Under the pieces are notes generated by a model. The model had not been told where the DNA came from. It did no database searches and worked only from the letters and a program-made list of their open reading frames with translations. This document shows, one piece after another, positions 5,009 to 41,842 of a stretch of DNA of 64,000 bases; the first letter of the stretch is position 1; each line of letters opens with the position of its first letter. Both the position numbers and the translations under genes were made by a program. Source of the stretch: Paramoeba atlantica (Eukaryota > Protista > Discosea); assembly GCA_977017575.1 (NCBI GenBank), contig CDRNVI010000021.1:186001-250000 (forward strand), read 5' to 3'.

Positions 5009-6350
5009 TATAATTATAAAAATCAGTGAGAATGCTTTCCAAAGATACCGGAGACCCGTCAGTAAACGACCTCCGGTAAGAGAGATTGGCTCGGGAGGCT
5101 GGCTGGTTGGCGGGGCTGAGCGGGCGGGGGTTGTTGGACGAGTAAGGGTGGGTGAGCGAGGTGAAGGTTATTGGGAGGGCTGTGATGGCTGTGGTACGAA
5201 GTTGTCTGGACAGAAAATCAATGCGCGCATGAGTAAAAGAGGTCTTAAACAGAGTGGGAAACCGAGTTCAACTCGCTTTCGAAGACGTGTGTGCGATAAA
5301 TGTGATATAACGACTACTTGTAGAAGGGGGAGGAGCATTTAATCAAAACAACCCAGGCTAAAGTGGACGACGGAGATACTCGTCCTTGCGCCCTCTCCTT
5401 CCTCTAAGGTCTTGAGCGTCATACACGACCAGGTAAAAATTGGCCTTTGCACGTGCATTACCAGAACAGGTTGAAGAAGTATCTAACGAAACCAAAGCGC
5501 ATACAGGTACATCAGGGGCCAAACTGTCCAAATACGCTCGAGGAGTTAATTTGGGATCCTTTTATTTTCACCCACGAATTTTCAGGTTTTCATTTCGAAA
5601 ACTCACCTGACACGAAATCAGGCCACAAATCGGGCACGACGAATTAACCTACGGTACCGAGGGAATAGTGCCTCCCTCAATATTTTTAAGCATGTCGTGA
5701 AAGTTTTGTGCGAACAGAATCAAATTTATTAATTTCACAATTTTTATAATTTTTTTTTCGAAAATTCTGTCACGCCATTTATAAAAATCAATGAGAGACA
5801 GAGTATATCTTTTAAGAAGAAAATTATGACCTAGGAGGTGCACACAGGGGGTCTAGGGGTCTATACAGACGAAACAAATACGAGAAATGATTTTTTGATT
5901 CCAGTTCTGTCGAATGCCGAAGGAATTAGATCAAAAGCTCTTACGCTACACTCTGTGGCCTGATTAGATTATTGTGACCTGGACTATATAAGCAAAAAAG
6001 CATAGGAGTAAAAATGTAAAAAAATGGTAATCGCCCATTCATATTTTACCTTACTCACCCCACGATAAGTTTACAAGGTACGCAAAGTCTATTTACTGAG
6101 ATCTTCAAAATGACACAAGAATTAGCTCAAACGGACTTACCATAATGATTTTAGAGGGGGGTGTCTTATCGTGTCGAGGGGTTTATTATAAACCCTGGAT
6201 GTGGTAATGAGGTAATTACCTCCCATTACTTCCTATTACCACCCAATATGTTGTTTACCTTTGCTTGTTTTCTGAAACGATATTTTGGGAACAAAGTACT
6301 GTAAGGCGGTTGGTTGAATAAATTGTAGCGTCTGATTTTCCCTACACTAC

Positions 6351-6377
6351 TAAAGATACAGTTTCTGTACCTTGTTG
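6351..6377 (+). ncRNA. 5'-truncated SL exon-like sequence followed by GTAC (SL-RNA pseudogene or truncated SL-headed retrocopy)
   Basis: TAAAGATACAGTTTCTGTACCTTGTTG is identical to the last 27 nt of the five SL copies in 29869-41702. It is followed by a GT dinucleotide and a perfect 15-bp hairpin (6411-6454). Confidence 0.55.
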
Positions 6378-6669
6378 GTACATTTTCCCTTTAGTTCATC
6401 TTTTCTTTCCCCGGCAACGGGCATAATCTTACTGTTTTATATGCCCGTTGCCGGCCGGCACTAAGGCCGAAACTGTCCCTCTTTCTCGGCGAAGTAGGGG
6501 ACGCGCTTCCACCCCATCACCCCTCCCCGGCTCACTCCTTGAGTGGGTTTTCTTCCCTCCCCGGCTTTCTTCCCTTCGCGCCCTTTTCTTCCCGGGGAGC
6601 CATGCGCCATGGTGGCCTCCCTTGAGGACCACTGGGCGTGGCTCTGCCTCGCATTATCGCGAGGCAGCG

Positions 6670-24578: not shown

Positions 24579-24780
24579 GAAGGGTCGTAAAAGTAGGGGA
24601 AAATAAACAACAAGCAACAACAAGCAAACCATCTCCGTAGATACCTAGATAACGAGGACAAGCCCACAAGTGCCAGGCAGGCCTGAAACCCCCCGTATTT
24701 TCCTTTATGTCTTCCCATTTTCCATTGAAATGACAGATCCCTTCCTTTTTATATTCACACTGTTGCATGCACCATAGAGT

Positions 24781-25481
24781 AGCTCAACACTGTTTCGTGC
24801 AGCGACTCAACCGGCTTTGGGTGGCTCAACGCCGTAACAACAGCGGATCTACACTACATGCGAGCGGCTCAACGCTGTATTAACAGCGGCTCAACGCTCC
24901 ATTTCATCAGCATGAGTGGCTCAACGCTGTATCAACAGCGGCTCTACACTACATGCGAGCGGCTCAACGCTGTATCAACAGCGGCTCAACGCTCCATTTC
25001 ATCAGCATGAGTGGCTCAACGCTGTATCAACAGCGGCTCTACACTACATGCGAGCGGCTCAACGCTGTATTGACAGCGGCTCAACGCTCCATTCCATCAG
25101 CATGAGTGGCTCAACGCTGTATCAACAGCGGCTCTACACTACATGCGAGCGGCTCAACGCTGTATTGACAGCGGCTCAACGCTCCATTCCATCAGCATGA
25201 GTGGCTCAACGCTGTAACAACAGCGGCTCTACACTACATGCGAGCGGCTCAACGCTGTATCAACAGCGGCTCTACACTACATGCGAGCGGCTCAACGCTG
25301 TATCAACAGCGGCTCAACGCTCCATTCCACCAGCATGAGTGGCTCAACGCTGTATCAACAGCGGTTCTACACTACATGCGAGCGGCTCAACGCTGTATTG
25401 ACAGCGGCTCAACGCTCCATTCCATCAGCATGAGTGGCTCAACGCTGTAACAACAGCGGCTCTACACTACATGCGAGCGGC
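24781..25481. repeat. Higher-order minisatellite (~95-bp unit built from 21/22/30-bp GCGGCTC-initiated monomers)
   Basis: Monomers GCGGCTCAACGCTGTATCAACA, GCGGCTCTACACTACATGCGA and GCGGCTCAACGCTCCATTCCATCAGCATGA recur in irregular order. Confidence 0.9.
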
Positions 25482-25521
25482 TTGATGTTTCTTTTTTTTT
25501 TTTGCTTACAAAAAGGTTGAT

Positions 25522-28500
25522 CTTTTTTTTTTGGGGGGGGGGATACGAGTTGAAAACAAGCAATCAAATTAGCAATTCTTTTTCTTTCCACAGATGTACC
25601 TTTTTTCTCAGCCCAAAACTAGCAATTTAGTCTCCCCTAAGTATATACTACAAACAAGAAAAACAGTAAAAATTAAAACAAGCAATCCATGCCCAATCCA
25701 TTCGCGCGTTCCGGACCGGGTCTTTCGACCTCTCCACGGCCTGACTTGTGAACCCTTCCCTTGTTATATGGGAGGGCGCAGGCGCGGGCCTGTGTCGACA
25801 GCGACACGGTCACGAAACAGGATGCTGGCCGACGGGGAGGAGATTCACTACCCGTGTGCTACCTCACTTGGGGTACCTAGCCCTCGCGGGCTAGGCGTGA
25901 GTATAGACTCTGTCGACCCGACCAGCACCCGTCCTGGATACCATGGTGTCTTCGTGCTGAAATAGGACTGTCAGTCCGAATCCCTACCTATCTCACATTG
26001 GGGTACCTCACTCTCGAAGGCGAGGCGTGAGAATAGGCACTGTAGGCTCGATCGCTCCTGCCGGTCCGCAGCTGGCACGATTCGGTGTGGTGTCAGAGGG
26101 TGCCTCGTGCAGTAAAGCGAGACTGGCATGGATATCCACGTCTGCCATGCGTCTTACAAGCATTCGTGCCTGAGACCGCATGAGCGTAACGTTCATGTCC
26201 TGGAGAAGAAAAAACATTGACGTTTGCTCGGACATATCACCCTTACATGCTGCGGCTCTTTTTCCCGCGATCTTCTTCAGCATATGGAGGGACGTCGGAC
26301 TCCATGATCCGTACGATTCCACTACCATGGCGGTGAAATCATGTCCGGCCTCTAGAGCCTCTTGCCTTTGTCCACGCTTGTGGTTCGTCGCATATTTCTC
26401 TGCGAAGGCCCCTGCAGCTACCATGCCAGCAGAACGGACCAGGTCCGTATATTTCTGTTGCTGGACGTGGGTCACCGCAAAATCAAAGACAAGGCCTTTA
26501 CCGAGCGTGTAGCTCGGAAGGAACACATCCCCTGGTCTTGTGAGTGCCCCCCTGGACCTCTGTTGCCGAGGCTGTGCTCCCTTTTCGGAGACAAATTGGC
26601 CTTTTGACAAACGTCAAAGAACTGGAGGGCCAAGGCATTATGCCTCGCCGAGATCCCGTAGTCGTGTTTACAGACCAATGCGTGGTCTCCTTGTGGTCCC
26701 ATCGGAAGCGTGCATCCTGAGACGGGACAGGGGTGTGTTTCTGGATATACTTTTTGTCCTAGCCACCAGGTGCACAGGGTGCGAAACTCCGTTTTAGTAA
26801 AGGCGTGCCCCTTTTCCCTGGAGGGCGTGACAAACAGCCAGTCACCTGCCCCTTTTCCAGATTGAGATATCCAACGTGCCCTCGTTTGAGGATCAGCTTT
26901 CTGATATGCATCGGTGTACTCGCGGGAAGAAATTGCACGGCTGAGCACCTTTTGGCGTGCGACTCGGTCGTTGGAAGATGAAAATTCGTGGTCGAGTTTC
27001 GTTTGTTCAAAGTAAGTGGTCGTCGTGTCTCCGGGTGGTGCTACGGAAAGATTCGCCGGGAGAGGTCGTTTTGATCCACGGAGACCCAGTACTTTTTTGA
27101 GGTGAGAGAGAGAGGAAGCGTGCTGAGGGGAAATTAGACCGGTTTTCTCTTCCAGGACGCTGGTGCCCGCTCGTGAATTGACGTCCAGTATTGCATCAGC
27201 AAAATCTTTTGCGTCGAGGGAGTTCCAGTTGTCCTTATCCGCTGCGAAAGAGACTGAGGAAACGTACGCCGATGAGGCATGCATCGCTGAAGAGCGCAGC
27301 CCGAATCCACCATAAGATTTTGGACGTTGTACTTGTGCGGCAGCGTCTTCATTTAAAGGACATATAGAGCGTTCCGTGGTATGCAGTATTGCTGTGTCAA
27401 GTTCTTCGCATAGCTCATGGACGGAATTGGTGGGTGTGGTTCTAAGAGAATATGCCATTTGGCTGAAACCAGCACATTGTCGGATGAGTGCGAGGGAAAC
27501 TTGCGGGTCTTCCATGTATTCGATCGCGGCTAGGGATTCTTCAGCAGGCAACAGGGTGTGTTCACGGAGAAATTCTGTGCAGAAATCAGTCGTTCCTACA
27601 GGGCTACATAAAATTGAAAAATTTCCCTCGCTTGTCTTTTTAGTCGTCGGGATGTTGTCGAAGCTGTCCAAGTGTTCGGCGGATTCAGGATGTGTAATCG
27701 CCTCGCACTTGCTGGCGTTTAGGAAGATGCCCCACTGTGGGCCGACTCGTTCGATGATGTCTAAAGCTCGTCTGACGTCGTGAGCCTTCCCCCCGAGAAT
27801 GCCGTCATCCAAATACCACAGATTAAGCTTAAGAAGACCAGGAAGTTGTCGATCTATCTCGGTAGTAACCAGTTGCATGACGAGGGAAAAAAGTAAAGGA
27901 CCCAACGGATCCCCTTGTTGCACACCCTCCTTTGAAGAAATCTGACGGAAACCGTAAGTGAGAATACTCTCGGTGGTGTAACACCATTCAACCCACTGGG
28001 AGAGCTCCGGGAAGTGCTCCCTCATAAGTGCAGCAAAGGCAGTTCTTGAGATGTTGTTAAAGGCATTTCGCAGATCCACTTTACATAGCGTGAAATCAGA
28101 ACTTCCCGCCTGAGAGGCCATCACGTGCCTACACAGGTGGATCAGGCGTTCGGCCCCTGCAGGTGTTGCGACTCCGTATTGATGAGGCCAGAGTAGTTTG
28201 CTTGCCTTTTCCTTTACTGCGGAGCAGGCCGCTTTGCTCACAAGTCGCCTTATTGTTTCGCCGGCAGCAATAGGACGGACATCATTTTCTCCCTTTTCTA
28301 AGGCACATAGTCTGGCGCCGCCGAAGAACTTCTGGACTTGGAGACAACCTTTCCCGGACAGCAAGAGGTTCATGACTTCCTTGAGATAGAAAAGCGGCTG
28401 TACCTTGTCGTCAGGGTGTGCTGCTAAGGCGCTCTGGAGATGCTCAGGGCGGAGGCCCATGGTGCCAGCCGATGTTCCGCGCCGGAAACTGCGTAGTGCC

Positions 28501-29904
28501 TTTTCAACTTCGCCTTCGGATAGATGTAAAGGCTCTCCTTCTATGGACGGAATGTGACTGAAGATGATAAAGGCAATCTACCTGGGTGCTTCGATTGGAG
28601 TTTTTCGTAAGTTTCTTCGGATTCAGGTGCCATCGGTGCTGCTGTAAGAGCTGCCATCGCACGGGAAAACTCCCCTTGTCTGGCCAGCAACTCGGCTCGT
28701 TTCGCCGCCTTGCCGGACTCGTCCACTTCCTCATCGTCGTTCCTCTCCCGCTTCTTTACCATTTGCGCAACAGATTCGTTCCACAGTGCCGCGTATTCCC
28801 TGGATTCCCAGCGATCCATGCGTTGGCTCGTTTTCGTGGTATAGGACGAATTTCCTTTTCGTCCCCCTCTTTTGGGCGCGGGCAGGACACATTTTGGGAG
28901 CATCGCTAAGCGTGTCCAGGCCTCAACCGAGTTCTCTCTAACCACTGCAGCCATTGTTTGGGTCAAAACGGAGGCCCACTGTTGTCTGCATCGGAATGGT
29001 ACATCTTTGCATGTGTTGATGGCGTAAGAGCAGACATAATCAAGAGACGGGAGCGAATCCTTGTAAATTTGGGAAATGGAAGCCTCTTCGGTTTCTGGCT
29101 CACAGGTTAGCGACGAGGTGTAAGAGCTAAAGGAGTCTTGACATTTTTCCTCATGGGAAGCTTTTTTATTGTGATCATAGTGCTTGCCGCATGAGGGGCA
29201 TAAGAAACGTCCTTCTTTTTCCCACCATTCCGAAGGCACAGTATCGCTATGTTGGCTTGCGACGTGATGGTAGTAGGCCTGCCACTTCCCTCCGTGTGCT
29301 GCGGTGCTCCAGTTGCACACTTCGACTGGACAGGTGCGACGTCTCATTGTGTCTCGTCTAGCTGGTTGGCGAGTCTTGGAATCTTTACTAACCCCTCTCT
29401 CGAAAATTTTGGGCGTCGACTTTTGGCTAGAAAGAGGGCTTTTTCGTAGGAGAAGCCTCGCTGTGGCCATGGAATGTGGTTCGTACCGCTCTGGGGTTTG
29501 GCTTGTTACTTCTTGACCTTTGCCAGACGTATTGGGGGCACAGTCCCTTGATACGCTGGAATGATTTCTCTCTTCGTCTGCCGATAAAATCATCCCCGTG
29601 TCAGGTGTCTGCTCTCGGTGCAAAGAATGTAGTGCCGTTTCCATTTTGTCTTGCCAGGCCGGTGTAATATTGGCGTCGTGTAGAGGGATTCATCATATGT
29701 ACTAGTTGCAGCGATAAGATGCTGATTACCCTCAAATTGGTCCCAGGAGCCTGGCGTGTGTGTTTTCTCCTCTTGGGCAAAAAGGTCATCTTCTGGTATC
29801 GTCATCGAGCCGCATGAATCAGCCTCCCTCATTGTCCGGATAAAAGAAATAGGGAAAGAAAAATAAGTCAACAAGGTACAGAAACTGTATCTTTATCGTT
29901 AAAG
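25522..29904 (-). mobile_element. SL-headed CRE/SLACS-type retrotransposon, unit E (frameshifted)
   Basis: SL 29869-29904; ATG 29832; ORF pieces 29832->28541, 28460-26472 (RT, WYLDD) and 26610-26008 (RLE: RPGDVFL, DFAVT, VVESYGSWS); C-run plus poly(A) near 25522-25542. Confidence 0.9.
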
Positions 29905-32900
29905 TTTTTTTTTTTTTATAATAGCTATATTAATTATACTTTTTTTTTACGCGTCCTTACTAGCAACAACAACAACAACAACAACTTACTTCCACACTTT
30001 ACGCGTCCTTACATGCGCAACGAAGGACGCAGGTTTTCTGCGGGCATCCGGAGTACCAACATGCGCGCTTGGGCTCGCATAAGGGTCACGTTCATTTCCG
30101 TGAGGAGGCGTTGGAAGGCCTTTCCACGCGAAAGTGTGCCCTGCGAAGCAGCTGAGCGGCGCTCGGCAACTTCTCGGAGAATTCCCCGCGCGCTCTCCGA
30201 CCAGGACCCGAAGGATTCCACCGCCATCGCGGTGAATCTATACCCTTGGGATTCGGCCTCGAGGCGCTCCAAACGTTTGTGTGCCGTAGCGTACCGTTCG
30301 GCAAAGGATCCTGCGTTTCCCACGTTAGCGCCTCGGACTGAGTTCGTATATGTAGGTTGCTGAACGTGAGTTACGCAGAAGTCCAATACCAAACCGGTAG
30401 CTAGGCCAAAGTTTGGGAGGAAGACATCGCCTGGTCTGGTGGGGCCGCCGCCCGGGCCGTGGTTGCCTAGACTGACCTCTCGTTGCGGGGCGAGGTGTGC
30501 CTTGGTGCACACGTCGCAGAAGTGCTCGACAAGGGCGTTGTGCCGGGAGATGAGGCCGTAGCCGCTTTTGCATGCGAGGGCATGCTGGCCATCAGATCCT
30601 AGCGGTTGGTTAGACTTGTCCATAGGGCAAGGGCGGGGGGTGTCGTAGACGTCTGCCCCGAGCCACCAGCGTGCCAGGGCGCGGAACTCCGTAGGGGTAA
30701 GGGCGTACCCCAGCTCTTTGGATGGGAGGACAAAGGCCCAGTTTGCGGCCGCTTCCCCGCTTTGAGAGAGCCATCTCGCTCTCGTTTCCTGATCAGCAGC
30801 CTCGAGCGCGCGGTAGAATTCTCGGGCGGCTATTGCTCGAGAAATGGTTTGTTGCTTAGGCGGAGTTGGACTTGCCGGTGGGGACTCTGGATCCTCTGGT
30901 GAGAGGTACCCTGTATGTACGTCGATGAGGGGTTTGTCGGACAGTTCGTTTACGTGGGCCATTGCCTCGCGGAAACCTTCTGCATCCAGCGCGTCCCATC
31001 CGTCTTGGCTCGCTGCGAAAGAGACAGAGGAAACGTATGCTGCTGAGCAGAAGAGAGACGAGGAGTGAAGACCGAAGCCGCCATATTCCTTTCTGCTCTG
31101 AGCCTGGACGCGTCCGGGAGGATTGAGTGAGCAAAGCGCGTCTTCTAATGCTTGTATCACCGCGGTGTCGAGGCTTGAGCATAGGTCTAATAAGGGTTTG
31201 GTAGGTGTTGCTCGGAGGGAGAAGACGAGCTGGCAAAAGCCAGAACATTGGCGGATGAGGGTTAGTGCTACTTGGGGGTCGTCGATTTTCTTTATAGCGC
31301 TGAGTGTGGACAATGCTGGGGCCAAGGCGTGTTCCCGGAGGTAGTCACTACAGTATTGCGCGGATCCCACCGGGCTGCCGAGGATGCTGAAATTACCGTC
31401 GCGGAGGATTCTCTGTTGCGGGATCTCAGGGAATAGTGCGACGCGGTGTGCGGATGGAGGCTTTAAAATCAATTCACACTTATGAGTGTTAAGAAGGAGT
31501 CCGAGTTGTTGACCTTCCCGTGCGATGATGTCGAGGGCTTGCTTGACGAGTGCTGCCTTTCCGGCGAGGACTCCATCGTCAAGGTACCAGACATGCAGGA
31601 AGAGTTCTTCGGGAAGCTCGGCGTTGATGATCTCCGCGAGGTGACGGATTACCAGGGAAAAAAGGAGTGGCCCCAAGGGGTCACCTTGCTGAACGCCTTC
31701 TGCGGAGTGCACTATGTGTTGTCCGAAAGTGAGATAGCTTTCCGTTTCGTAACACCATTCTACCCATTTAGAGAGGTTCGGGAAATGCTCCTGAGTCAAG
31801 GAAAGAAAGGCGGATCTTGAAACGTTATTAAAAGCGTTTGAGAGGTCAACTTTGCACAGGACGAAATCGGTATCATCAGCGTACTTGGTTACCGTCTGAC
31901 GACACAGGTGAATCATGCGCTCGGCTCCAGCGGCGGTGGCAACACCGTATTGCTGTCCTTGAAAGAACGTACTTGCTTTCGCCTTGCTTGCCGCACAGGC
32001 TGCCTTGCTTGCGATGCGACGAATAGTTTCACCTACGGCTATTGGGCGGATGTCCTGTTCGCCTTTCTGCAGTGCGCAGAGACGAGCTCCGGCGAAATAT
32101 TCGTGGGAGTCAAGGTGAGCCTTACCCGACAGAAGGAGATTAATAAGGTCAGTGAGGGCTGCGAGGGGCTTGGTCTTTGAATCAATGTTCACCAGCAGGG
32201 CCTCTTGGATGTGCTCCGGGCGGAGACCCATGGTGCCACCCGAGGAGCAACGACGAAAGGATTTCACAACCGACTCTAGCTCTTTTTCGGTGACCTGGAG
32301 CTTTTTCGGTGTTCCTGGATCTCTGTTGTGGTGGGAAACGTGTGTGGCGCTAGAGTGGGAAGGCGACAAGGATGTTTTTTCTGAAATTTGGCGAGGGACT
32401 CAGCGTTGTCCGGAGCCAAAGGGGACGAGATGAGGGCTGTGATGGCTCGGGAAAGTTCGCCTTGCCGTGCGAGAAGATCTGCCCGAACTTCTGTTCGCGT
32501 CATTCCTATGCGAGCGGAGACGTCTCGCTTCTTTAGGAAGTCGCTCTCCGCATTCTTCCAGAGGGAGGCATATTCCCCTGACTGCCACCGCAGAAGCGAC
32601 CCCTTTACATGATTAGAATATGATGTGTGACCCTTTCGACCGACGCGGTGGGGTGCAGGGAGTACACATTTCGGCAGCATGGCTAACAACGTCCAGGCGG
32701 TTACGGTGTTGTCCTTCACCGCTTAGTAGAGGACATCTGTCAGCACTGAGGCCCACAGTTGCCGACATCGATAAGGGACATTTTTACAGGTGTTCATCGG
32801 GGTACTGCATATGGTGCGAAGGGACGGTAAGTCGGTAGGCGACTCCCTAAGGTGGTCTGGTGATGAAACCTGAGGATCAATGGGAGAGGCAGCAGGAGGG

Positions 32901-35025
32901 TCGGTGCCTGCGGGGCATGAGCCGAGGTGGGAGGTTTTCTTGGCTAGGTCGTAGTTTTTCCTGCAAGAAGAGCAAAGGAACCTTCCATGGGATGTCCACC
33001 AATCTTCGGAAACGGTATCACTGTGCCGAAGGGCCACGTGGTTGAAATATGCCTGCCATTGACCTCCATGAGACGCTGAGCTCCAGGAGCAGCCTTCGGC
33101 CGGGCATTCTCGGGTCTCGGTAGGCAATAAATTCGAAAGTGTAGCAGCATTGACGCTGTTAGACTGGAGCAGAACGGAGCGGTGAGCCGAGTACGAGTTT
33201 TTAGGGCCCGGATTTTGTTCTATACCCCCACGAAAGAGTTCCATCTGCGCGGAGCGCTGGGTCCATCCTGTATTAGCTTCCAGCTCGTGGGTGGGTGGGA
33301 TTGAGTTTCGGGCTACGTATTGAGGGCCTGGGTTCCATTCCACCCCCCCTCGCATAAGACCGATATCGATTTGTGTTTTGCTCCATCCAGATTGAGCAAT
33401 TAGGTCTCGCGTCGGGGCGAAACACCAGAGCGGTCCGTCCGGGGAAGGAATTTCTTTCCACGCAGTGGCAAATTCCGTGTCGATACCAATTTGATTGCAG
33501 AGGGCGAAAGGGCACCGGTCAGGGGGAGTGGTTCGAGGGATGGCAATAAGGGTTCGCCCCGTTGGGTGGGTGAAAACTGCTGTCCTATTGCCTGGGATCG
33601 TACTAGATTGAGGAGCACACTGAAGTGCTGCGCTCACAGAGGTACCGGCAAGTTGTCCGATAGTGCAGTTGAGATCAAGACTGTGCAAATTGCAGGGGAT
33701 GGTTCTGAGATAACTGGTTTATTCGAATACTTGTGACGGAGTTCGGGCAAAAGCGAAGGTGGACGTCCACGCTAGTATCTCCTGGTTCTTGCTCGACGTC
33801 GTCGTCGTCCATCCATTCCTCTATGGGAATGTCGCAAATTTCTCGAGGAGGGAAGGGGGGGTTTCGTAGGGCTGATTGGCCAGAGTACCGTACCATGGGT
33901 AGCAAAACTGACTCAAATGCTTTACTCTCTTCTAGGATGGTCTTCTCCCTCTCTTCTAGAGCTAATCGGAAGGCCCTCTTGATGTCGTGCTCAAGATGGG
34001 TTTGCTGGTGCTCGTTTAGAAGGGAAGCGTCCATAAACTGCTTCGTACATTTAGAGCATACGTGTCCTTGTTTTTTGGTGATGGAAAGTTTACGGGTCAA
34101 GGCAATGTAGTACTGCTTTATGACTTGTAGATTTGCTATGCAAATCTTGTGTCGGGCTAGTTCCTCCTGTGCAAGAAGCTGTGTCACCGCCGAGGAAAAC
34201 TTCTGTGCTTCCGAGCACGCTGCGATGTACCCCAAGAATCCTTCATTGGGCGCACGGGTTCTTTTTGAACTCTGGGGCTGAGACTCCTTCTGAGCCTTGT
34301 CGATTAAGGATAGGCGCTCTTCTAGAGAAAGCGGGCGATACTGGTCCGATTTAGGCTCGTTTGAATTTGCGCCAAGATGAGTAGGTGCGGATGTCGGGCG
34401 GTCGCTGCCATGTGATCCAACCGCTTGAGCGTAGGTACTGCGTCGGTGAGATCCTTTGAAAGGCGCAGTGGAACGAAGTGGGAGTATCGAACCCCCACCG
34501 TGAGAGGGTTTGGGAGAAGAGGCGATGGTACGTTTTTGTGCGGGTAGCATATCACACTCATCGCAGCGTTTAAAGTAGTGGCGCGAAGGAGAAAACGAGG
34601 AAGCGCATAGTTCGCACGTTTTCGACGCCGACGGAGCGTTTGAAAAGGATAGCGAGCATGTCTCACACCACCGGAAGTATGGTCTGGCAGGGGAAAAGGG
34701 GGCAGAGCAAGCTACACATATTTTTTTGTGGGCCACGGTAAGGGAGGAAACAGATTTCGGCGCGGAAGTCTTGAACGGAGAATACGACCTGATAACAGGT
34801 TGTGCAGGAGGGGGTACGAATTTGGGTGAACATTTCACACAAAAGCGATGGGAGGGGCTCTGTGGGACGAAACGCGTGCCACAGTGGCAACACCAGAGCT
34901 TCCCCCCTGATCGAGGGTCATTCATTGGTGTCTTGTAATTGATTAATGAAAGAAAAAGGTAATAATTCAACAAGGTACAGAAACTGTATCTTTATCGTTT
35001 TTTTTTTGTATCTTTATCGTTAAAG
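29905..35025 (-). mobile_element. SL-headed CRE-type retrotransposon, unit D (ORF1 + ORF2; ORF2 has one stop and one frameshift)
   Basis: SL 34968-35025 (interrupted); ORF1 34925-33675; ORF2 pieces 33688-32723, 32719-32276 and 32369-30009 (WYLDD; RPGDVFL, DFCVT, AVESFGSWS); poly(A) 29905-29917. Confidence 0.9.
33675..34925 (-). CDS. ORF1 of unit D: three C2C2-like ribbons and one C2H2 finger
   Basis: CCHC...FCVKC, CVAC...WCETC, CELC...RCDEC, CSKC...HQQTH. Confidence 0.75.
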   Translation of the reverse strand: MNDPRSGGKLWCCHCGTRFVPQSPSHRFCVKCSPKFVPPPAQPVIRSYSPFKTSAPKSVSSLTVAHKKICVACSAPFSPARPYFRWCETCSLSFSNAPSASKTCELCASSFSPSRHYFKRCDECDMLPAQKRTIASSPKPSHGGGSILPLRSTAPFKGSHRRSTYAQAVGSHGSDRPTSAPTHLGANSNEPKSDQYRPLSLEERLSLIDKAQKESQPQSSKRTRAPNEGFLGYIAACSEAQKFSSAVTQLLAQEELARHKICIANLQVIKQYYIALTRKLSITKKQGHVCSKCTKQFMDASLLNEHQQTHLEHDIKRAFRLALEEREKTILEESKAFESVLLPMVRYSGQSALRNPPFPPREICDIPIEEWMDDDDVEQEPGDTSVDVHLRFCPNSVTSIRINQLSQNHPLQFAQS

Positions 35026-35026
35026 A

Positions 35027-36372
35027 TTTTTTTTTTGCAGATATATACGGATGCTTCTATTAAGAGTATGGTTAGTTCTCAGGAAATTCGAAGTGGCGCT
35101 GGTATTGTGGTTATACTTTTTTTTTTTTTTTTTTGAGTACGAATTCTAACTTTTCTTTTATACTACTACGACTTTCCTACTTCATTTCTTAACATTCCCG
35201 TATCTTACCCACTTTTTCCCGTTAACGCGTTTCCACCTACCCGCTTTCCCGTTAACGACTTTCCACTTATTCACTTTCCTTTTCCCACTTTCCCTTTACC
35301 CACTTTCCCTTTACCCACTTTCCCTTTACCCGTTTTCCGCTTAACTTTTTCCCCTACCCCCTCTCCTTTTCCACTTCCCCACGACCTCCAAGTCATTCGC
35401 GCAAGAAGATCACTAAGCAAGGTGCAGATCGCCGGGTCCGGAAACAACTTCGAAACCCACTTACCTCGCACTGGGAACCTCACTCGTAAAAGCGAGGCGC
35501 GAGAATTAGCCCCGTCAGCACGATCAACCCCCGAGGACTTTCCCAGGTGCCTTTACCGGCCTGTCCTTCGACGTTCTGCCCGCTTTCGCGCGTTCTTGTT
35601 GACATGGCCGCCCGCTGACACCGAGTTAGCTGAGAGGTTACACATTTTTTGATTGAGATTAGTAACTTCATCTACCCGGTCGAAGGTAAACGTACCCGCC
35701 CGCTGGGTCCTAATCGCCATGACGGCTTTCGGGCCTACTAGGTGCAGAGGAACCTCCGTTGTCTTCAGGTGACCAGTCGACACGCGAAGCTTATCGACCC
35801 TCTCCATGAAGGATTCTAATAAACATACGGTCTCTCCAACGGCATCCATGGCATTCTCATACCAGATGCTTATTAGAGCCTCGTTCGTATGTTCTGCGGG
35901 GAATGGTATTTTGGCGCTGGGCAGCTCACACAAAAGATCATTGGCGAGATTTCGATGGGCACGCCCGGAACCTCTAAGTTCACTGAGGAGGAGGTGGCAA
36001 AGGTCCAAGGATTGGGTATGAATCCTTGAGAGTGTGTGGTAAGCGTCGTCGCACCACAACGCGTAAGTCGTCTCCCCAGAAAGAGGTGGCTCGAAAGGAT
36101 TCCAAACCCAATCCTCCAGTCTGTTACAATTCCTACTGGCGTAATGTGCCAGGCGTCGCGAGAGAGGAAAAACCGGTTCACCATAGTATGCGATGTCTTC
36201 CTCATAAGATGTGCCTGTGTCCCCTGGGTCGAACGGCTCAGAGAGATTGCAATCAGATTCGTAGTCATCCTCGCTGCAAGGAAAAGATTCTGTCATAAAA
36301 CAGAAAACGTAGTAGAGAAAGGAAAAAGAAATAATTCAACAAGGTACAGAAACTGTATCTTTATCGTTAAAG
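35027..36372 (-). mobile_element. SL-headed RT-less passenger unit C
   Basis: SL 36337-36372; 40-nt UTR; 247-aa ORF; 3' structured motif shared with units A and E (35455-35525); purine-rich tail; poly(A) 35027-35036. Confidence 0.8.
35553..36296 (-). CDS. Hypothetical 247-aa protein (acidic N-terminus, basic C-terminus)
   Basis: Starts at the first ATG after the SL; uninterrupted; no family recognised. Confidence 0.6.
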   Translation of the reverse strand: MTESFPCSEDDYESDCNLSEPFDPGDTGTSYEEDIAYYGEPVFPLSRRLAHYASRNCNRLEDWVWNPFEPPLSGETTYALWCDDAYHTLSRIHTQSLDLCHLLLSELRGSGRAHRNLANDLLCELPSAKIPFPAEHTNEALISIWYENAMDAVGETVCLLESFMERVDKLRVSTGHLKTTEVPLHLVGPKAVMAIRTQRAGTFTFDRVDEVTNLNQKMCNLSANSVSAGGHVNKNARKRAERRRTGR

Positions 36373-36373
36373 C

Positions 36374-37120
36374 TTTTTTTTTGGGGGGGGGATAGTATTG
36401 AGTTTAACGTTTTTATCTACTTTTCGAACACTTTCGCACACTTTTCACACTTCACCGTACTTACTCTCCCCACTTCACCGTACTTACTCCCCACTTTCCA
36501 CACTTTCCCTTAACCCTCTCATCCATCCCCGTCCTTACCCCCTACCCTATACCGACTCGTCCGCGCGAGCGCCCATGTGGTCCAGAGCCTCCGCTCCCAC
36601 CCCGTTAGCAGTATAAGATACTTTGTGTTGCTGTACGAGGGTGGGAGATGTGGAGGTGACCTCCGCTCCCACCCCGTTAGCAGTATCAGATACTTTGAGT
36701 TGCTGTACGAGGGTGGGAGACGTGGAGGTAACGAAGCGCAAAGACGCCGTCGCGCCAAGGGCAAAAAGCGGGAAGAGGGACATGGCGGGACGGACGCGGA
36801 GACGAGGGAAAACGACGCCGCAGCCCATCCGTCTGGAACTCTGCCCCCACCCCGTGAGCAAGTATACAATACTTTGGGCTGCTGGCACGGGGGTGGGGGA
36901 CGCAAGAGAGAAAGACAGAAGAACAACGAGCGCGCAGAGGCGGGAGGAAGAGGTGGGGAGACATGACGCGAGGGGATGATGGGATGAGAGAGGGAGGAGG
37001 GTTGCCGGCAACAGAGTGAGAATTTGAGGGGGGTGCCCTCCCATGGTCCAGAAGATGTTGTAGGAAAGAAAAGGAGAAATAATTCAACAAGGTACAGAAA
37101 CTGTATCTTTATCGTTAAAG
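36374..37120 (-). mobile_element. SL-headed RT-less passenger unit B with three hairpin repeats
   Basis: SL 37085-37120; first ATG 37044; hairpins at 36588-36656, 36660-36728 and 36843-36899; C-run plus poly(A) at 36374-36391, the same end type as unit E. Confidence 0.8.
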
Positions 37121-37639
37121 ATTTTTTTTTTTAACTTTCTATAAATGTACGGTATCACTTTCTTACTTACTTTCCTACTTACTTTACTTCGCCCTTATCA
37201 ACTTCGCCCGCTTCTCTCCCTTCTCCCCCCCCCCCCCAAAGAAACCATCCGCGACTTCCCGACTTCACCCGCTTCTTTCCCTCACTTCCCCCCCCCCGAG
37301 CATCCATCCGCGCCTTCCAAACTTTGCCCTCCGCTTTCCCTCACTTCCCCCCAGAAATCAATCCGCGCGTGCTCCACTCCTTCTTCCAGCAGTGCGCGCT
37401 TCGGACCGGGTCTCTCGACCTCTCCACGGCCTGGCTTGGGAACCCTTCCCTTGTTATACGGGAAGGCGCAGGCGCGGGCATGTGCCGACAGCGGCACGGT
37501 CACGAAGTTGGGTTTTGATCGCCGGATTCGGATGAACATTCCGAATCCATACCTGTCTCACATTGGGGTACCTTGCTCGTGAAAGCGAGGCGTGAGGATA
37601 GGCACTGTCGGCTCGATCGGCCTCGGGCCGCTCTGGAGG

Positions 37640-40600
37640 CTATTCCTCCAGAGTTGCGATGGGGTCTTCGGAAGGTGAACGAGCAACCATCATGCGCGCT
37701 TGAAAGCGCATAAGGGTTATGTTTAGTTCAGCGAAGATTCGGCTCGTTGCCTCACCTTCCGAAAGTAGACCCCCCGAGGCGTGCGAACACCTCTCACCGA
37801 CTTTTCGGAGCACGGCTGAAGCGCTGGGGCTCCAGGCGCCATAACTTTCGACCACCATGGCCGTAAAGTCGCATCCTGCTTCTACGGCTTCTCGACGCTG
37901 CTTGCCCTTCTCCATTGAGGAATAATGTTCGGCAAATGACCCCGCGGCAACCCAGCTAGCGTTTCGGACTTTGTCCGTATATTTTAATTGCTGAGCATGG
38001 GTGACCGCGAAGTCAAGCACAATGGGATTTCCAAGAAAAAGGCTGGGCAAGTATATGTCGCCAGGTCTAGTGAGGGCCCCACCTGGGCCCCTGTTCCCGA
38101 GACTCTTTTCTCGTTGAGGGGCGAGGCGGGATCGACTGCACACGTCCGTGAACTGGTCCGTAACAGCGTTGTGCCTGGTCACAATACCATGGCCATGTTT
38201 GCAAGACAGTGCATGGTCCCCTTTGCTGTCAAGGGGGAGCGAGCATTTCGGCATGGGGCACGTGCTATCTTCATGGTAGATGTCCACGCCTAACCACCAA
38301 CGGGCCAAAGTTCGGAATTGTGTGGGGGTAAAGGCGTGCCCAAGGTCTTTCGAAGGAGTCACAAAGGCCCAGCTGCTCGCTCCCGTGCCACACTGGGAGA
38401 TCCACCTTGCACGGGTTCGTGCGTCAGTTGTCTCATATTCCTGGGAAAACGCATGGGCTGCAATAGCATAACTGATTACCCGCTGGCGCGGAATCTTCCC
38501 TTTGGGCCACTGTGGGGTTAACATGTCCTGGCATTCTTCAGAACCATAGAGGGGAGTCGAGAGTGGGTAGGCATCCGTGGGTGTGTTGGCCGTGCGGGAA
38601 GTCGTACGAAGAATATGTCCCGGAGGCTCGTCCGGGGGGTGAGGATCAATCCCTGGCGGAGGGCGCCTTCTCTTCCGGTAGGAGTACGGCGCGCTCAGGG
38701 CCTTCTCGCATGGGGCGTTGGGAGTTGTGAGAACACGACCTCGGGGATCGAGGAGAGCAGTGCCGGCCTTCTGATTGATATCGAGGATGGCCTCCGAGAA
38801 ACCTTCAGCGTCTGTGGGATCCCAGGAATCTTTGGCAGAGGCAAAGGCGACGGATGCAACGTAAGCCGCGGAGGCGTGGAGAGCTGCGGATCTCAGACCT
38901 AATCCCCCATGGCGCTTCAGTCGCTGTGCTTGAGATTGTGCTGACCTGTCCAGAGGACAGATGATTGCCTCTATAGCGGTCATGAGAAAGTCGTCTAAAC
39001 GGGAGCAAAGGTGAATCAGGGACTGTGGGGGCGTACTTCTCATGGCATACACCATTTGACAGAACCCCGCACATTGACGAATTAGGGCAAGTGCGACCTG
39101 GGGGTCCTGAATGTTGGTGATGGCATCGAGGGTATCCTCGGCTGGTTCTAGGGCGTGAGAAAGAAGATAAGCAGAGCAGTGGTCGGCGGATCCTACAGGA
39201 CTCCCTAGTATGTCAAAGTTCCCCTGCGAATTGATCTTCTCGTCGGGTATGTCTGGGAAGTAATCAGCCTGGTGGGCCGAGCTGGGGGAAGTAATAATTT
39301 CGCATTTCGACGTATTGAGATGCAAGCCCCATTGAGGTCCTACTCGGGCGATCGTGTCTAGGGCGTCTCTAACTTCCTGCGCCTGGCCAACGAGGACGCC
39401 ATCGTCGAGATACCAGAGTTGGGCGGGAATATCAGTTTGAAGGTTAATGGCTTCTGAGAGCTCCAGGGCCACTAACGAGAAGAGCAATGGTCCTAGGGGA
39501 TCGCCCTGTTGTACTCCTTCCTCGGAGGAGATGAATCGGGCCCCGTAGGTAAGAGAGCTGGGGTCGGAATAGCACCAATTGATCCAAGGGAAGAGTTCCG
39601 GGAAATATTCCTGTACTAGTGGAAGGAAGGCAGCCCTGCTTACGTTATTGAAAGCGTTACGTAGGTCCACTTTGCACATGACGAAGTTCGGGTTTTCCAT
39701 ATTGGACGACATGGCCAGGCGACACATGTGAATGACTCTTTCGGCCCCGGCTGGCGCTGCCACTCCGTACTGTTTGCCTTCAAAGAGCTCGCTCGCTTTG
39801 GGTCGGATTGCGTTGCATACGGCTTTGCTCGCTAATCGCCGAAGGGTTTCACCGGCAGCGATCGGATGAACATCATTTTCGCCCTTTGATAGGGCGCATA
39901 AGCGCGCCCCTGCAAAGTGCGCCTGTACTTCAGAGGGTGCCTTCCCAGCTAGGAGGTGATTTGTTAGCTTTGTGAGGGATCGGAGAAAGTCATTTCCGTG
40001 TACGAGCAGTGCTGCCTGTAGGTGCTCTGGGCGTAATCCCATAGTGCCGGCAGAGGAACCCCTGTTGAAGCTCTTCAGCGTCTTTGCAACTTCGCGTTCG
40101 TCAAGTTCCAGTGGAGCGCAGTTCGGAGGCGGGCAGTTTTCGCACGAGTCAATTTGAAGACGGCGGGGGTGTTTTTCTAGCAATTTTTCAAATGTCTCGT
40201 CATCGTCAGGCGCCATTGGATCTGACGTTAGGGAGGCCAACCCTCTAGAGAGCTCGCCGTGGCGGACGAGGAGTTCTGCTCGAATCGCTGCCTTCTCGTC
40301 TTCGTCAGGGAATTCCGTTGGGGACTTTTGCTTTTTTCGACAGGCTACAATTGCTTCGCTCCATAGGTCCGAGTACTCTTGTTCCGCCCAACGCTGCATG
40401 CATTTATACGCATGTGAGGCATATGCCATGTGGCCTTTGCGGCCCCCTCGATGCGGAGCTGGTAAAACGCATTTGGGAAGCATGGCCAGAAGCGTCCATG
40501 CCTGTAAGGAGTTTTCAGAGACCGCGTTCCGAATGGCGGAGGAGAGGATTTCTTCCCAGATCTGGCGGCAACGATAAGGCACGTCTTTGCACGTACTCAG

Positions 40601-41626
40601 CTGAAGAGAGCAGACAGAAGGAAGAGGTGGGAGCTCAAAGTTGGTGTTCTCTGGTGTTGGTGCGGTGCTCACTTCGTTGGGTGGAGTAAGAAGTTCGGGA
40701 GAAAGGAGCGCGACGGTTTTCGTTCCTTTGCAGCTGTGTGTGTGCGATGATCGTTTGTGGTTGTCGTAGTGGCGTCCGCATGAGGTGCATAGAAAACGGC
40801 CTTCTCTGTACCACCATTCATTAGGGATGCTGTTACCGTGCCGGCATGCGACATGGTTATAGAAGGCTTGCCAGGATCCGCCATGCGACGGACTGCGCCA
40901 TGAACATCCCTGGGCCGGGCACTCTCGGAGCGCGGCAGACTTTCCTTGGGACAATGAGTTGGGCTCAGCGAGGCTAACGCCAGCGTTTTCAATATTCTGG
41001 GTTTCGTGTCTTCTTCCTGGTTGCTCTTGAGATGGACCCGGAATAAGTTCATAAGGATGCAAGAGTGAAGGTGTCTCTGGGTCTACCCGGTATCGGATGA
41101 GCTTATTTCTCCGTGGAGTAGGGGTTTTCTTGGAGTGACCTTTAATGTCCTCATTGCTACGTGCTTGGGCGGATAGAGCAGTTTTGAGTGGTGTACTTAG
41201 ATGCTGTGTAGCATTCAAAGCCTCTTTCGTCTTCTTCGCTGGCGTTACTTGCCTGATAACAGCGGAGTGTTGCATCTCTTCATTTTCGACCTCCGTGTGA
41301 CCTGTGTCCGGTGTTGCATTAATCCCACCTACGATCGCGTTCGTTCGGCGGATCCAATCTTCAGAAATATTCTGAGGGATGGGGGTCGTGTAAACGTCTT
41401 CATGGTAGGTGCTCGTCCCCGTGTAAACGTCTTCATGGTAGGTGCTCGTCCCCGTGATTAAATGTTCGTTTCCTTTAAATTGGTCCCAAGACCCCGGTCG
41501 GTGAGTTCTGCCATTAATTTCTAAGCATTTGTCGTCCGTCTCCATGGCTTCGGCTTCGTGGTCCGGATTTCCGCTGTTGTCGTCTATGGGAGGAAGTGTG
41601 TCTGCGGGGGGGATGATACCAGACAT
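37640..41626 (-). CDS. CRE-clade polyprotein: zinc fingers, RT, zinc knuckle, RLE
   Basis: CPAQGC...HVACRH...CTSCGRHY; GVQQGDPLGP; WYLDD; CPMPKC...HALSC...RHN; RPGDIYL...DFAVT...VVESYGAWS. In-frame 33-bp tandem duplication at 41387-41452. Confidence 0.93.
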   Translation of the reverse strand: MSGIIPPADTLPPIDDNSGNPDHEAEAMETDDKCLEINGRTHRPGSWDQFKGNEHLITGTSTYHEDVYTGTSTYHEDVYTTPIPQNISEDWIRRTNAIVGGINATPDTGHTEVENEEMQHSAVIRQVTPAKKTKEALNATQHLSTPLKTALSAQARSNEDIKGHSKKTPTPRRNKLIRYRVDPETPSLLHPYELIPGPSQEQPGRRHETQNIENAGVSLAEPNSLSQGKSAALRECPAQGCSWRSPSHGGSWQAFYNHVACRHGNSIPNEWWYREGRFLCTSCGRHYDNHKRSSHTHSCKGTKTVALLSPELLTPPNEVSTAPTPENTNFELPPLPSVCSLQLSTCKDVPYRCRQIWEEILSSAIRNAVSENSLQAWTLLAMLPKCVLPAPHRGGRKGHMAYASHAYKCMQRWAEQEYSDLWSEAIVACRKKQKSPTEFPDEDEKAAIRAELLVRHGELSRGLASLTSDPMAPDDDETFEKLLEKHPRRLQIDSCENCPPPNCAPLELDEREVAKTLKSFNRGSSAGTMGLRPEHLQAALLVHGNDFLRSLTKLTNHLLAGKAPSEVQAHFAGARLCALSKGENDVHPIAAGETLRRLASKAVCNAIRPKASELFEGKQYGVAAPAGAERVIHMCRLAMSSNMENPNFVMCKVDLRNAFNNVSRAAFLPLVQEYFPELFPWINWCYSDPSSLTYGARFISSEEGVQQGDPLGPLLFSLVALELSEAINLQTDIPAQLWYLDDGVLVGQAQEVRDALDTIARVGPQWGLHLNTSKCEIITSPSSAHQADYFPDIPDEKINSQGNFDILGSPVGSADHCSAYLLSHALEPAEDTLDAITNIQDPQVALALIRQCAGFCQMVYAMRSTPPQSLIHLCSRLDDFLMTAIEAIICPLDRSAQSQAQRLKRHGGLGLRSAALHASAAYVASVAFASAKDSWDPTDAEGFSEAILDINQKAGTALLDPRGRVLTTPNAPCEKALSAPYSYRKRRRPPPGIDPHPPDEPPGHILRTTSRTANTPTDAYPLSTPLYGSEECQDMLTPQWPKGKIPRQRVISYAIAAHAFSQEYETTDARTRARWISQCGTGASSWAFVTPSKDLGHAFTPTQFRTLARWWLGVDIYHEDSTCPMPKCSLPLDSKGDHALSCKHGHGIVTRHNAVTDQFTDVCSRSRLAPQREKSLGNRGPGGALTRPGDIYLPSLFLGNPIVLDFAVTHAQQLKYTDKVRNASWVAAGSFAEHYSSMEKGKQRREAVEAGCDFTAMVVESYGAWSPSASAVLRKVGERCSHASGGLLSEGEATSRIFAELNITLMRFQARMMVARSPSEDPIATLEE

Positions 41627-41666
41627 AAAAATTAACCCGTACCTCGGAAAGAGATGAAATGGAATT

Positions 41667-41702
41667 CAACAAGGTACAGAAACTGTATCTTTATCGTTAA
41701 AG
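41667..41702 (-). other. SL exon-like sequence (other copies: 37085-37120, 36337-36372, 34968-35025, 29869-29904)
   Basis: Identical 36-mer CTTTAACGATAAAGATACAGTTTCTGTACCTTGTTG. With the preceding AAT seen in three copies it is 39 nt, the kinetoplastid SL length. Confidence 0.85.
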
Positions 41703-41711
41703 ATTTTTTTT

Positions 41712-41817
41712 CCCGTCCTCACACTTCGCTTCAGAGCTAGCTAGCACGTTTCTATTAGCTAGCAAATGCGACAGAAGCGACGCCGGGCTTGGAACCGGTA
41801 TCTAGCGTGTTTACGGA
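41712..41817 (-). ncRNA. Twister ribozyme (type P1, with P5 insertion)
   Basis: UCCG-UAA-ACAC-GC-UAGAUA-CCGG-UUCCAAGC-CCGG-[P5 UCGCUUC/GAAGCGA]-GUGU-GAGGA-CGGG. P1, P2, P4, T1 (UCC/GGA) and T2 (GC/GC) all pair. Predicted cleavage U41813^A41812. Confidence 0.9.
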
Positions 41818-41842
41818 GATGGTTATAATGAAATAATATTGT

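Follow-up and report, generated by a model that had tools for sequence, protein, structure and literature searches.

A train of spliced-leader-headed, poly(A)-tailed copies of R2/CRE-like retrotransposons and their passengers in Paramoeba atlantica DNA

Among described mobile elements, those closest to the system reported here belong to the CRE clade (SLACS, CZAR, CRE1, and CRE2), whose members encode in a single open reading frame (ORF) a reverse transcriptase (RT), a restriction-like endonuclease (RLE), and zinc fingers, end in a poly(A) tail, and are associated with the spliced leader (SL) (PMC12278014, PMC4728078). CRE elements occupy one fixed position inside the exon of the SL RNA gene and carry only the duplicated part of that exon. 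These SL-gene-resident elements are the only SL-linked elements of kinetoplastids, Bodo saltans included, in the searchable literature, where we found no description of dispersed SL-headed RLE elements, or of trains of them, in a kinetoplastid. Here we describe such a train in a window of 64,000 nucleotides (nt) from a Paramoeba atlantica assembly (GCA_977017575.1, contig CDRNVI010000021.1, positions 186,001 to 250,000 of the forward strand); positions given without a contig are those of the window. On its minus strand, the segment 25492-41711 contains five SL-headed, poly(A)-tailed units (A to E, in transcriptional order), three short poly(A)-tailed pieces (F1, F2, and F3), and one SL fragment. 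The train resembles the CRE systems in that its host reads as a kinetoplastid and in its combination of RT, RLE, zinc fingers, poly(A), and a link to the SL. It differs in that the whole exon is fused by its 3' end to the element, the copies are dispersed (469 SL copies versus about 40 SL genes), and the sampled SL genes are uninterrupted.

Other systems share parts of this architecture. Two dinoflagellate reports describe retrogenes in which a DNA-encoded 5' SL marks retro-copied mature messenger RNAs (mRNAs) and stacked relicts arise by re-splicing (PMC5585692, PMC6050394). The present copies are like those relicts in carrying a DNA SL on retro-copies and, at one locus, a stack; they are unlike them in that the SL here tags chiefly RNAs of retrotransposons and passengers rather than of host genes, is usually single and complete, and heads copies that follow one another tail to head. 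R2 has one target, in the 28S ribosomal DNA (rDNA), is co-transcribed and ribozyme-processed, and does not need poly(A). The likeness to R2 lies in the best matches among solved structures, in a C-terminal RLE, and in a 3' untranslated region (UTR) structure common to the passengers, and the R2 RT is known for template jumping and tandem products; unlike R2, the train elements appear to be trans-spliced, polyadenylated, and not bound to rDNA. In nested clusters of long interspersed nuclear elements (LINEs), such as those of Zepp, HeT-A/TART, and Giardia GilM/GilT, poly(A) gives way at a junction to the next copy, which is 5'-truncated to a variable extent. Zepp, in Chlorella and Coccomyxa, stacks co-oriented copies in clusters that form GC peaks (PMC3446292). 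All of these use other endonucleases or chromosome ends and have no SL tag, whereas the train is interstitial and mixes several families with passengers. As in L1-type trans-mobilization, unrelated polyadenylated RNAs (F1) and RT-less partners (B and C) would have been copied by the same machinery, with 5' truncation; unlike in L1, the enzyme is of the RLE type rather than the apurinic/apyrimidinic endonuclease (APE) type, and passenger C has a specific 3' hairpin beyond poly(A) alone.

The picture that emerges is of a large, recently active RLE superfamily that appears to have left the SL genes and to be processed like host mRNA, that mobilizes passengers and stray transcripts, and that accumulates in co-oriented, tail-to-head trains beside satellites. 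The SL tag gives the exact 5' end of full-length copies, so that RT behavior at capped ends, 5' truncation, and re-splicing can be read from the DNA.

The 36-nt sequence at the unit heads is, on sequence grounds, the host SL exon, because it is followed by a GTATGAG intron in tandem SL RNA/5S ribosomal RNA (rRNA) repeats, where it stands between an upstream ...gttAA and a downstream GTATGAGAAGC. About 40 such intron-bearing SL genes lie in tandem repeats with 5S rRNA genes on contigs C107, C97, C74, C11, C24, and C3 (C-numbers denote contigs of the genome, and L-numbers denote loci fetched from it). Genome-wide, the 36-mer has 469 copies at up to 2 mismatches, against 0 for the reversed control, and more than 400 of the 469 lie outside SL genes. 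This mapping, which had been proposed as a check in an earlier reading made from the letters of the window (the sequence-only reading), agrees with that reading in taking the 36-mer for the host SL rather than for a sequence private to the elements. The same reading had placed the array outside any SL RNA gene array, with no SL intron in it and no SL after its last poly(A), and so we find it: the intron is absent from the train, the sole 15-mer intron match in the window being at chance level, and no SL occurs beyond the last tail of the train. All 12 of the 12 SL genes fetched were intact, and the CRE arrangement of a fixed insertion in the SL exon with target duplication was not found among the SL genes read, a sample outside of which lie the C74, C11, and C24 arrays. 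A genome search for an A-run followed by SL and intron gave 0 matches, which means that true SL genes lack an upstream tail. The SL RNA repeats at C74:104196-121665 have 7.3-kb periods versus about 2.55 kb, which implies some 4.7 kb of extra DNA per unit, and at C11:854-6863 and C24:267027-267485, a variant SL with the full intron comes 297 nt after an SL with intron nt 1 to 81. It is possible that the extra DNA in these three arrays represents true insertions into SL genes.

The structure of the units shows, as far as sequence can, that they are DNA copies of trans-spliced, polyadenylated mature RNAs, as the sequence-only reading had also concluded. Full-length copies begin with the host SL, and the junction with the unit falls exactly where the exon ends (the genes read ...TTG/GTATGAG and the copies ...TTG/unit, the slash marking the junction), and tail sites vary: among A-family copies with 98 to 99% identity, the A-run begins at no fewer than six different 3' UTR positions, and relatives of unit C use three poly(A) sites. 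The bases between an upstream A-run and the SL likewise vary (none, T, G, C, CT, or CGT). The RNAs copied would be those of the RLE superfamily, of RT-less passengers, and occasionally of unrelated transcripts. At L045, an SL is followed by SL nt 21 to 36, a single stacked relict that looks like the expected product of a new SL spliced onto an AG inside the DNA-encoded SL. A conserved pyrimidine tract followed by AG/GTACG lies about 25 nt past the DNA-encoded SL in unit A (41650-41640) and at L016, L026, L057, and L059; this AG/GTAC site in the 5' UTRs is likely an internal trans-splice acceptor for retrocopies that are expressed. No LINE head of the form SL/GTACG was present in the sampled DNA.

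Judged by their predicted proteins, units A, D, and E are R2/CRE-like RLE retrotransposons lacking long terminal repeats (the non-LTR class). All three have a non-LTR-type RT domain (RVT_1, E values of 4e-16 to 5e-18), and the best PDB matches of the RT are R2 proteins. Unit A (37122-41702, minus strand) begins with the SL at 41702-41667 and comprises a 5' UTR (41666-41627), an intact ORF of 1,328 amino acids (aa) (41626-37640), a 3' UTR (37639-37133) with a hairpin at about 37590-37550, and an A11 tail (37132-37122). The ORF encodes two N-terminal Cys/His fingers, the RT at residues 583 to 790, and, at about residues 1130 to 1215, a C terminus that in translation reads CxxxxC...HxxxC and then RHN, PGD, LDF, and K. 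Motif reading thus finds a CCHC and a PD-(D/E)xK nuclease at the C terminus and no APE domain, and the earlier assignment of unit A to the RLE elements stands. Hallmarks of target-primed reverse transcription (TPRT) are also present, namely, a tail on every unit and many 5'-truncated E copies that share one 3' end. A homology search returned only unnamed relatives and Porphyridium elements. Within the genome, at least 148 copies of the RLE nuclease domain were scored (674 candidates); they fall into subfamilies with 99, 84, 72, 65, and 62% identity, and many of them have ORFs of 1,200 to 1,350 aa. Siblings of unit A are 98 to 99% identical to it. A 33-bp tandem duplication in its ORF (41387-41452) is single-copy in the contigs of four other runs, and a family variant in which 508 bp at 39850-40359 are missing and replaced by CTGT occurs in all four.

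Units D and E are 40 to 55% identical to A at the amino acid level, with frame changes. Unit D (29940-34997) has a 5'-clipped head, SL nt 7 to 36 (34997-34968), a body at 34967-29949, and an A9 tail at 29948-29940; it represents another RLE family and has an additional ORF at the N-terminal end, a single in-frame stop, and one frame change, and the siblings seen are only partial (94 to 97%). Unit E (25523-29904; SL 29904-29869, body 29868-25533, A10 tail 25532-25523) contains RT and RLE, aligns to A over residues 31 to 1326 with three frame changes, and has two copies of the 3' hairpin (26054-25972 and 25924-25842). The sequence-only reading had cast unit E as a founder, the retrocopy of a trans-spliced mRNA. 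That role is contradicted by its RT domain, its alignment to A, and its full-length siblings, of which there are at least seven at 97 to 99% besides many more 5'-truncated ones; by these sequence criteria, unit E is an ordinary young family member.

The remaining units appear to be passengers. Unit B (36374-37121; T at 37121, SL 37120-37085, body 37084-36383, A9 tail 36382-36374) is non-autonomous, with two 72-nt hairpin repeats at 36588-36731, and belongs to a family of at least 40 scored copies (752 candidates) whose limits are the SL and the tail. Unit C (35117-36373; G at 36373, SL 36372-36337, A18 tail 35134-35117) has a 247-aa ORF (36296-35553) that matches no Pfam family and a 3' UTR hairpin at about 35500-35450; the 3' hairpin is common to A, C, and E, with compensatory changes. 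The relatives of unit C are one 98% sibling at C9:300034 and several 3' fragments. The sibling differs from unit C in its extra bases before the SL, its SL junction, and its poly(A) site; at the SL/5' UTR junction, the two copies read AATTATTTC and ATTTC, and similar shifts occur in two other families. The notion that the G before the SL of unit C is an inherited base was dropped, the sibling having CT there. F1 (35027-35116) consists of 80 nt (35116-35037) and an A10, without SL. A stretch 100% identical to it lies inside a different repeat, one with at least nine copies, where no A-run follows at that point, and on this basis F1 reads as a 5'-truncated copy of a polyadenylated transcript. 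A 3' transduction that originated at a former unit C locus was also considered for F1 and rejected, as F1 is an internal piece of that other repeat with a tail added.

The exact 36-mer SL occurs four times in the train, at the heads of A, B, C, and E (window search; 0 in shuffled sequence), and the junctions show that the ...TTG of each of these is joined to a unit with an A-run at its end. Fusion exactly at the TTG exon end, which the sequence-only reading had claimed, is thus seen at all four exact heads. Its description of five SL-unit-poly(A) repeats is right as to the five units, although it left out F1, F2, F3, and the SL fragment, and its statement that each SL is the same 36-mer is true of four heads and not of the head of unit D. 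That head is split and reads A10, T, SL nt 1 to 19, A10, SL nt 7 to 36, the first part being an orphan 5' SL fragment at 34998-35026 (T, SL nt 1 to 19 at 35025-35007, and an A10 run at 35007-34998). Between D and E lies F2 (29905-29939; 22 nt at 29939-29918 and an A13), and after E, F3 (25492-25522; 19 nt at 25522-25504 and an A12) provides the final tail. The upstream edge of the train is an A8 tract (41704-41711) directly before the first SL head, with a T at 41703 between them; no repeated retro tail was found in 41712-41773, upstream of it. In all, the train includes at least nine poly(A)-ended pieces, and all 10 of its runs of eight or more A's (25492-41711) are on the minus strand, with 0 on the plus strand.

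The train is interstitial: about 22 to 25 kb of other DNA flank it on either side within the window, unrelated DNA running to 1 and to 64000; within the window, it does not lie at a chromosome end, as a telomeric or end-addition LINE array would. Contigs assembled from short reads of the same four other runs cover 97 to 100% of unit A, and zero of these contigs span a junction. No RNA run was found to contain the stretch, and in short reads an SL carried by the RNA would be masked by one encoded in the DNA. An assembly artifact is an unlikely source of the train because units A, D, and E are only 40 to 55% alike at the protein level and the same architecture recurs at many loci.

Such trains are common in the genome, and co-oriented clusters lie on C48, C14, C55, C63, C16, and C9. 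The junction samples described here come from loci picked by SL or by RLE domain and are biased accordingly. About 22 independent tails of RLE copies could be read: about 4 are followed by SL-derived sequence and about 18 (roughly 80%) by SL-less, 5'-truncated retro pieces. Across 149 distinct A-run junctions, a full SL follows in 15, a partial SL in 6, and something else in 128, and where an SL remnant comes after a tail, its first base is nt 1, 3, 6, 7, or 32. Seen from the other side, 19 of 41 distinct SL heads have eight or more A's within 4 nt upstream, against a random-site chance of 0.2%, and an SL fragment with an A-run precedes 3 more. Eight E siblings (seven of them full-length) match into the SL region, and six of these have at least 13 A's immediately before the SL. 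Seven E-tail fragments stand in succession at C9:290997-295578, and an A-family head in another assembly has a layout identical to that of the A-run and SL heads. Internal tails are short (median, 11 to 15 nt), with no difference in length between those before full SL heads and those before other pieces. The siblings of A, B, and C each have different neighbors, which indicates that the units arrived independently and that the train was not copied as a block. Co-mobilization of A-B, B-C, or C-D as multi-unit transcripts was not seen either, the siblings stopping at the unit borders and having other neighbors. The age order along the train is uninformative, as A, B, C, and E are all young.

We favor growth of the train by tail-targeted integration, to which we would give about an even chance of being correct. 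TPRT would start preferentially in existing A/T tracts, chiefly the DNA-encoded poly(A) tails of earlier copies, where nicking of the bottom strand would let its T-run serve as a primer on the poly(A) of the RNA. The new copy, full-length or 5'-truncated, would land in the same orientation between the tail of an older unit and that unit's former follower, and each insertion would bring a new tail and hence more targets per hit. The SL would be a passive tag of completed cDNA rather than a docking site. Tail targeting is favored because the upstream poly(A) is the constant partner at the junctions and SL-less pieces occupy the same tail-adjacent position; that all ten A-runs lie on one strand also counts for it. 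The sequence-only reading had pictured an array able to extend itself wherever it sits; a target regenerated by each insertion agrees with our reading, the target being the poly(A) tail and not the SL. Several points weigh against tail targeting. No pair of empty and filled sites was found, so that no single tail insertion has been observed directly (the candidate pair L010/L012 was rejected, its 729-nt difference being an internal deletion and not a tail insertion), and a target duplication consisting of A's would be invisible. The A8 before unit A is not the tail of a recognizable retro unit. Orphan 5' SL fragments before full heads (nt 1 to 12, 1 to 14, 1 to 19, and 5 to 19) are not predicted, and the recurrent start positions of some post-tail pieces could be RNA ends rather than aborted cDNAs. 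The adjacency of the young units A, B, and C would be more easily explained by a single event. Sequence specificity is usual among RLE enzymes, and we know of none with documented A-tract specificity.

The main rival to tail targeting, unlikely in our estimate, is serial template jumping, in which an R2-like RT at the 5' end of one RNA would jump to the poly(A) end of the next and yield a concatemeric cDNA that enters in one integration. Template jumping is a documented property of R2 proteins (PMC11371274), and it would fit both the junctions made of an A-run, 0 to 3 odd bases, and a complete SL and the adjacency of three young units (A 99%, B 99%, and C 98% identical to siblings); the recurrent starts of SL-less pieces could then be true RNA 5' ends. 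End-to-end jumps should follow complete templates, however, and about 80% of the post-tail pieces are 5'-truncated, with the seven consecutive truncated E tails calling for seven premature jumps. Jumping should also copy the whole tail, yet the internal tails are short and no longer before full SL heads. Random insertion, with survival only in tolerated islands of transposable elements (TEs) and arrays made by DNA duplication or unequal crossing-over, seems to us very unlikely. It would be expected to hit unit bodies and both strands, whereas here all boundaries are tail to head and the ten tails share one strand; moreover, the units of the train differ from one another and their siblings have other neighbors. 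Some arrays are clearly DNA duplications, and the island is GC-rich with satellites at its flanks, as this explanation would have it. At C55:272655-288662, five A-family heads (four with the RLE domain seen) recur with a 3,990-bp period, and the four internal heads have the same SL clipped to TGTTG after the A-run; here one clipped copy has been duplicated in tandem at the DNA level. Further cases are higher-order repeats of 7.26 kb and a block of 2.6 kb that is identical on C1 and C3. Duplication of this kind explains some arrays (C55 and the 7.26-kb repeats) and does not explain this train. A variant without targeting, in which a chromosome end or break is healed by successive additions, as at Drosophila telomeres, is at odds with the interstitial position.

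The sequence-only reading had instead made the SL the landing pad: RLE enzymes would cleave within or at an SL encoded in the DNA, in the manner of CRE/SLACS/CZAR and NeSL-1 in SL genes, and each SL-headed insertion would provide a new pad. There are features that this would explain. The segment 35026-34968 looks like an SL into which poly(A) alone was inserted, with a 13- to 15-bp duplication; in several families, full heads have 5' SL fragments broken at nt 12 to 19 in front of them; SL genes are the targets of related RLE clades (PMC12278014); and the C74 array (7.3-kb periods) and the C11/C24 SL arrays hold extra DNA. Most tails, however, are followed by SL-less sequence, and SL-less pieces land in the same way; SL-derived sequence follows only about 4 of about 22 RLE tails and an SL or part of one only 21 of 149 A-run junctions. 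The post-tail SL remnants have no fixed start site, the genome contains no A-run followed by SL and intron, the fetched SL genes are intact, and the double heads recur within larger duplicated blocks and so represent few events. We therefore consider an SL landing pad highly improbable.

The copies pose a puzzle, namely, how a perfect SL is regenerated from copies that lack a splice acceptor at the junction, which reads ...TTG and not AG before the 5' UTR. A DNA-encoded SL heads every one of the 18 A-family 5' UTRs found, and no master copy without an SL and with an AG acceptor was found. The SL also scarcely varies between families whose proteins are 40 to 60% different. Either all the templates come from a small number of unseen master loci or the SL is restored by a noncanonical step. 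The 18 SL-headed 5' UTRs, the near-invariant SL, and the ...TTG junction suggest the second, a cycle in which SL-headed DNA copies themselves are the source of new copies and an undescribed step restores a perfect SL each time, although we regard such a cycle as decidedly doubtful. In one candidate step, cDNA would be transferred by homology from the internal, DNA-derived SL of a read-through transcript to the terminal SL of an abundant capped RNA, and the SL would work like the R repeat of retroviruses. Alternatively, the upstream A-run of the transcript and its own tail would provide homology to both sides of a tail target. If such a cycle is real, this is a LINE lineage that swapped a host-gene target for its own tail.

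The surroundings of the train have features of their own. The GC content peaks over the TE island (0.50 to 0.57 at 18000-42000 versus about 0.40 in the flanks). Trains adjoin short satellites: in the window, a 95-bp satellite at 24724-25490 abuts the final tail, and on C9 the satellite units measure about 15 nt (L084, from C9:301300 onward, and L064). TE islands with trains recall the nested LINE clusters at algal centromeres and, as a matter of speculation, may mark chromosomally important sites. Just downstream of the satellite lies a 996-aa ORF (21642-24632, minus strand) that matches no Pfam family; exact-protein look-ups gave no record for this ORF or for that of unit C. Upstream of it, CTTGTTG occurs twice inside a TTG-rich stretch, probably as a microsatellite rather than as SL relicts. 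No Rfam family matched at gathering scores anywhere in the window. Upstream of the first SL, 41783-41814 (minus strand) matches the twister ribozyme at 16.8 bits versus a gathering score of 37.6 (E value of 0.42 in a 400-nt search). It lies within a core of about 57 nt (41774-41830, minus strand) that recurs, dispersed, in at least 20 copies at 85 to 95%; the 62 nt that separate this core from the A8 are not common to other copies.

Further SL-bearing families occur elsewhere. Divergent pairs of SL heads (minus then plus), 1.1 to 1.8 kb apart, are found at C2:510218/511839, C13:61843/63464, C12:689578/691128, and other sites; their bodies open with ATGGG..TGTTCAC-type ORFs and form a different SL-headed family, with no A-run in front. 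A family resembling short interspersed nuclear elements (SINE-like; 6342-6379 on the plus strand and loci L031 to L040) carries the last 21 to 31 SL bases and then GTACATTTT and a pyrimidine-rich stretch. It makes up most of the 185 sites of SL followed by GT outside SL genes, and an A-run precedes 0 of 9 copies. Within 3-kb loci, no convincing target-site duplications were found for this family or for SL heads without an A-run in front. Finally, a 5,093-bp tandem repeat at C1:9752-25065 (L001 to L004) has a full SL between two copies of a sequence of about 28 nt, CTTATTTGTATTTCGCACGAATAAAAGT, and resembles an SL-only insert with a target duplication.

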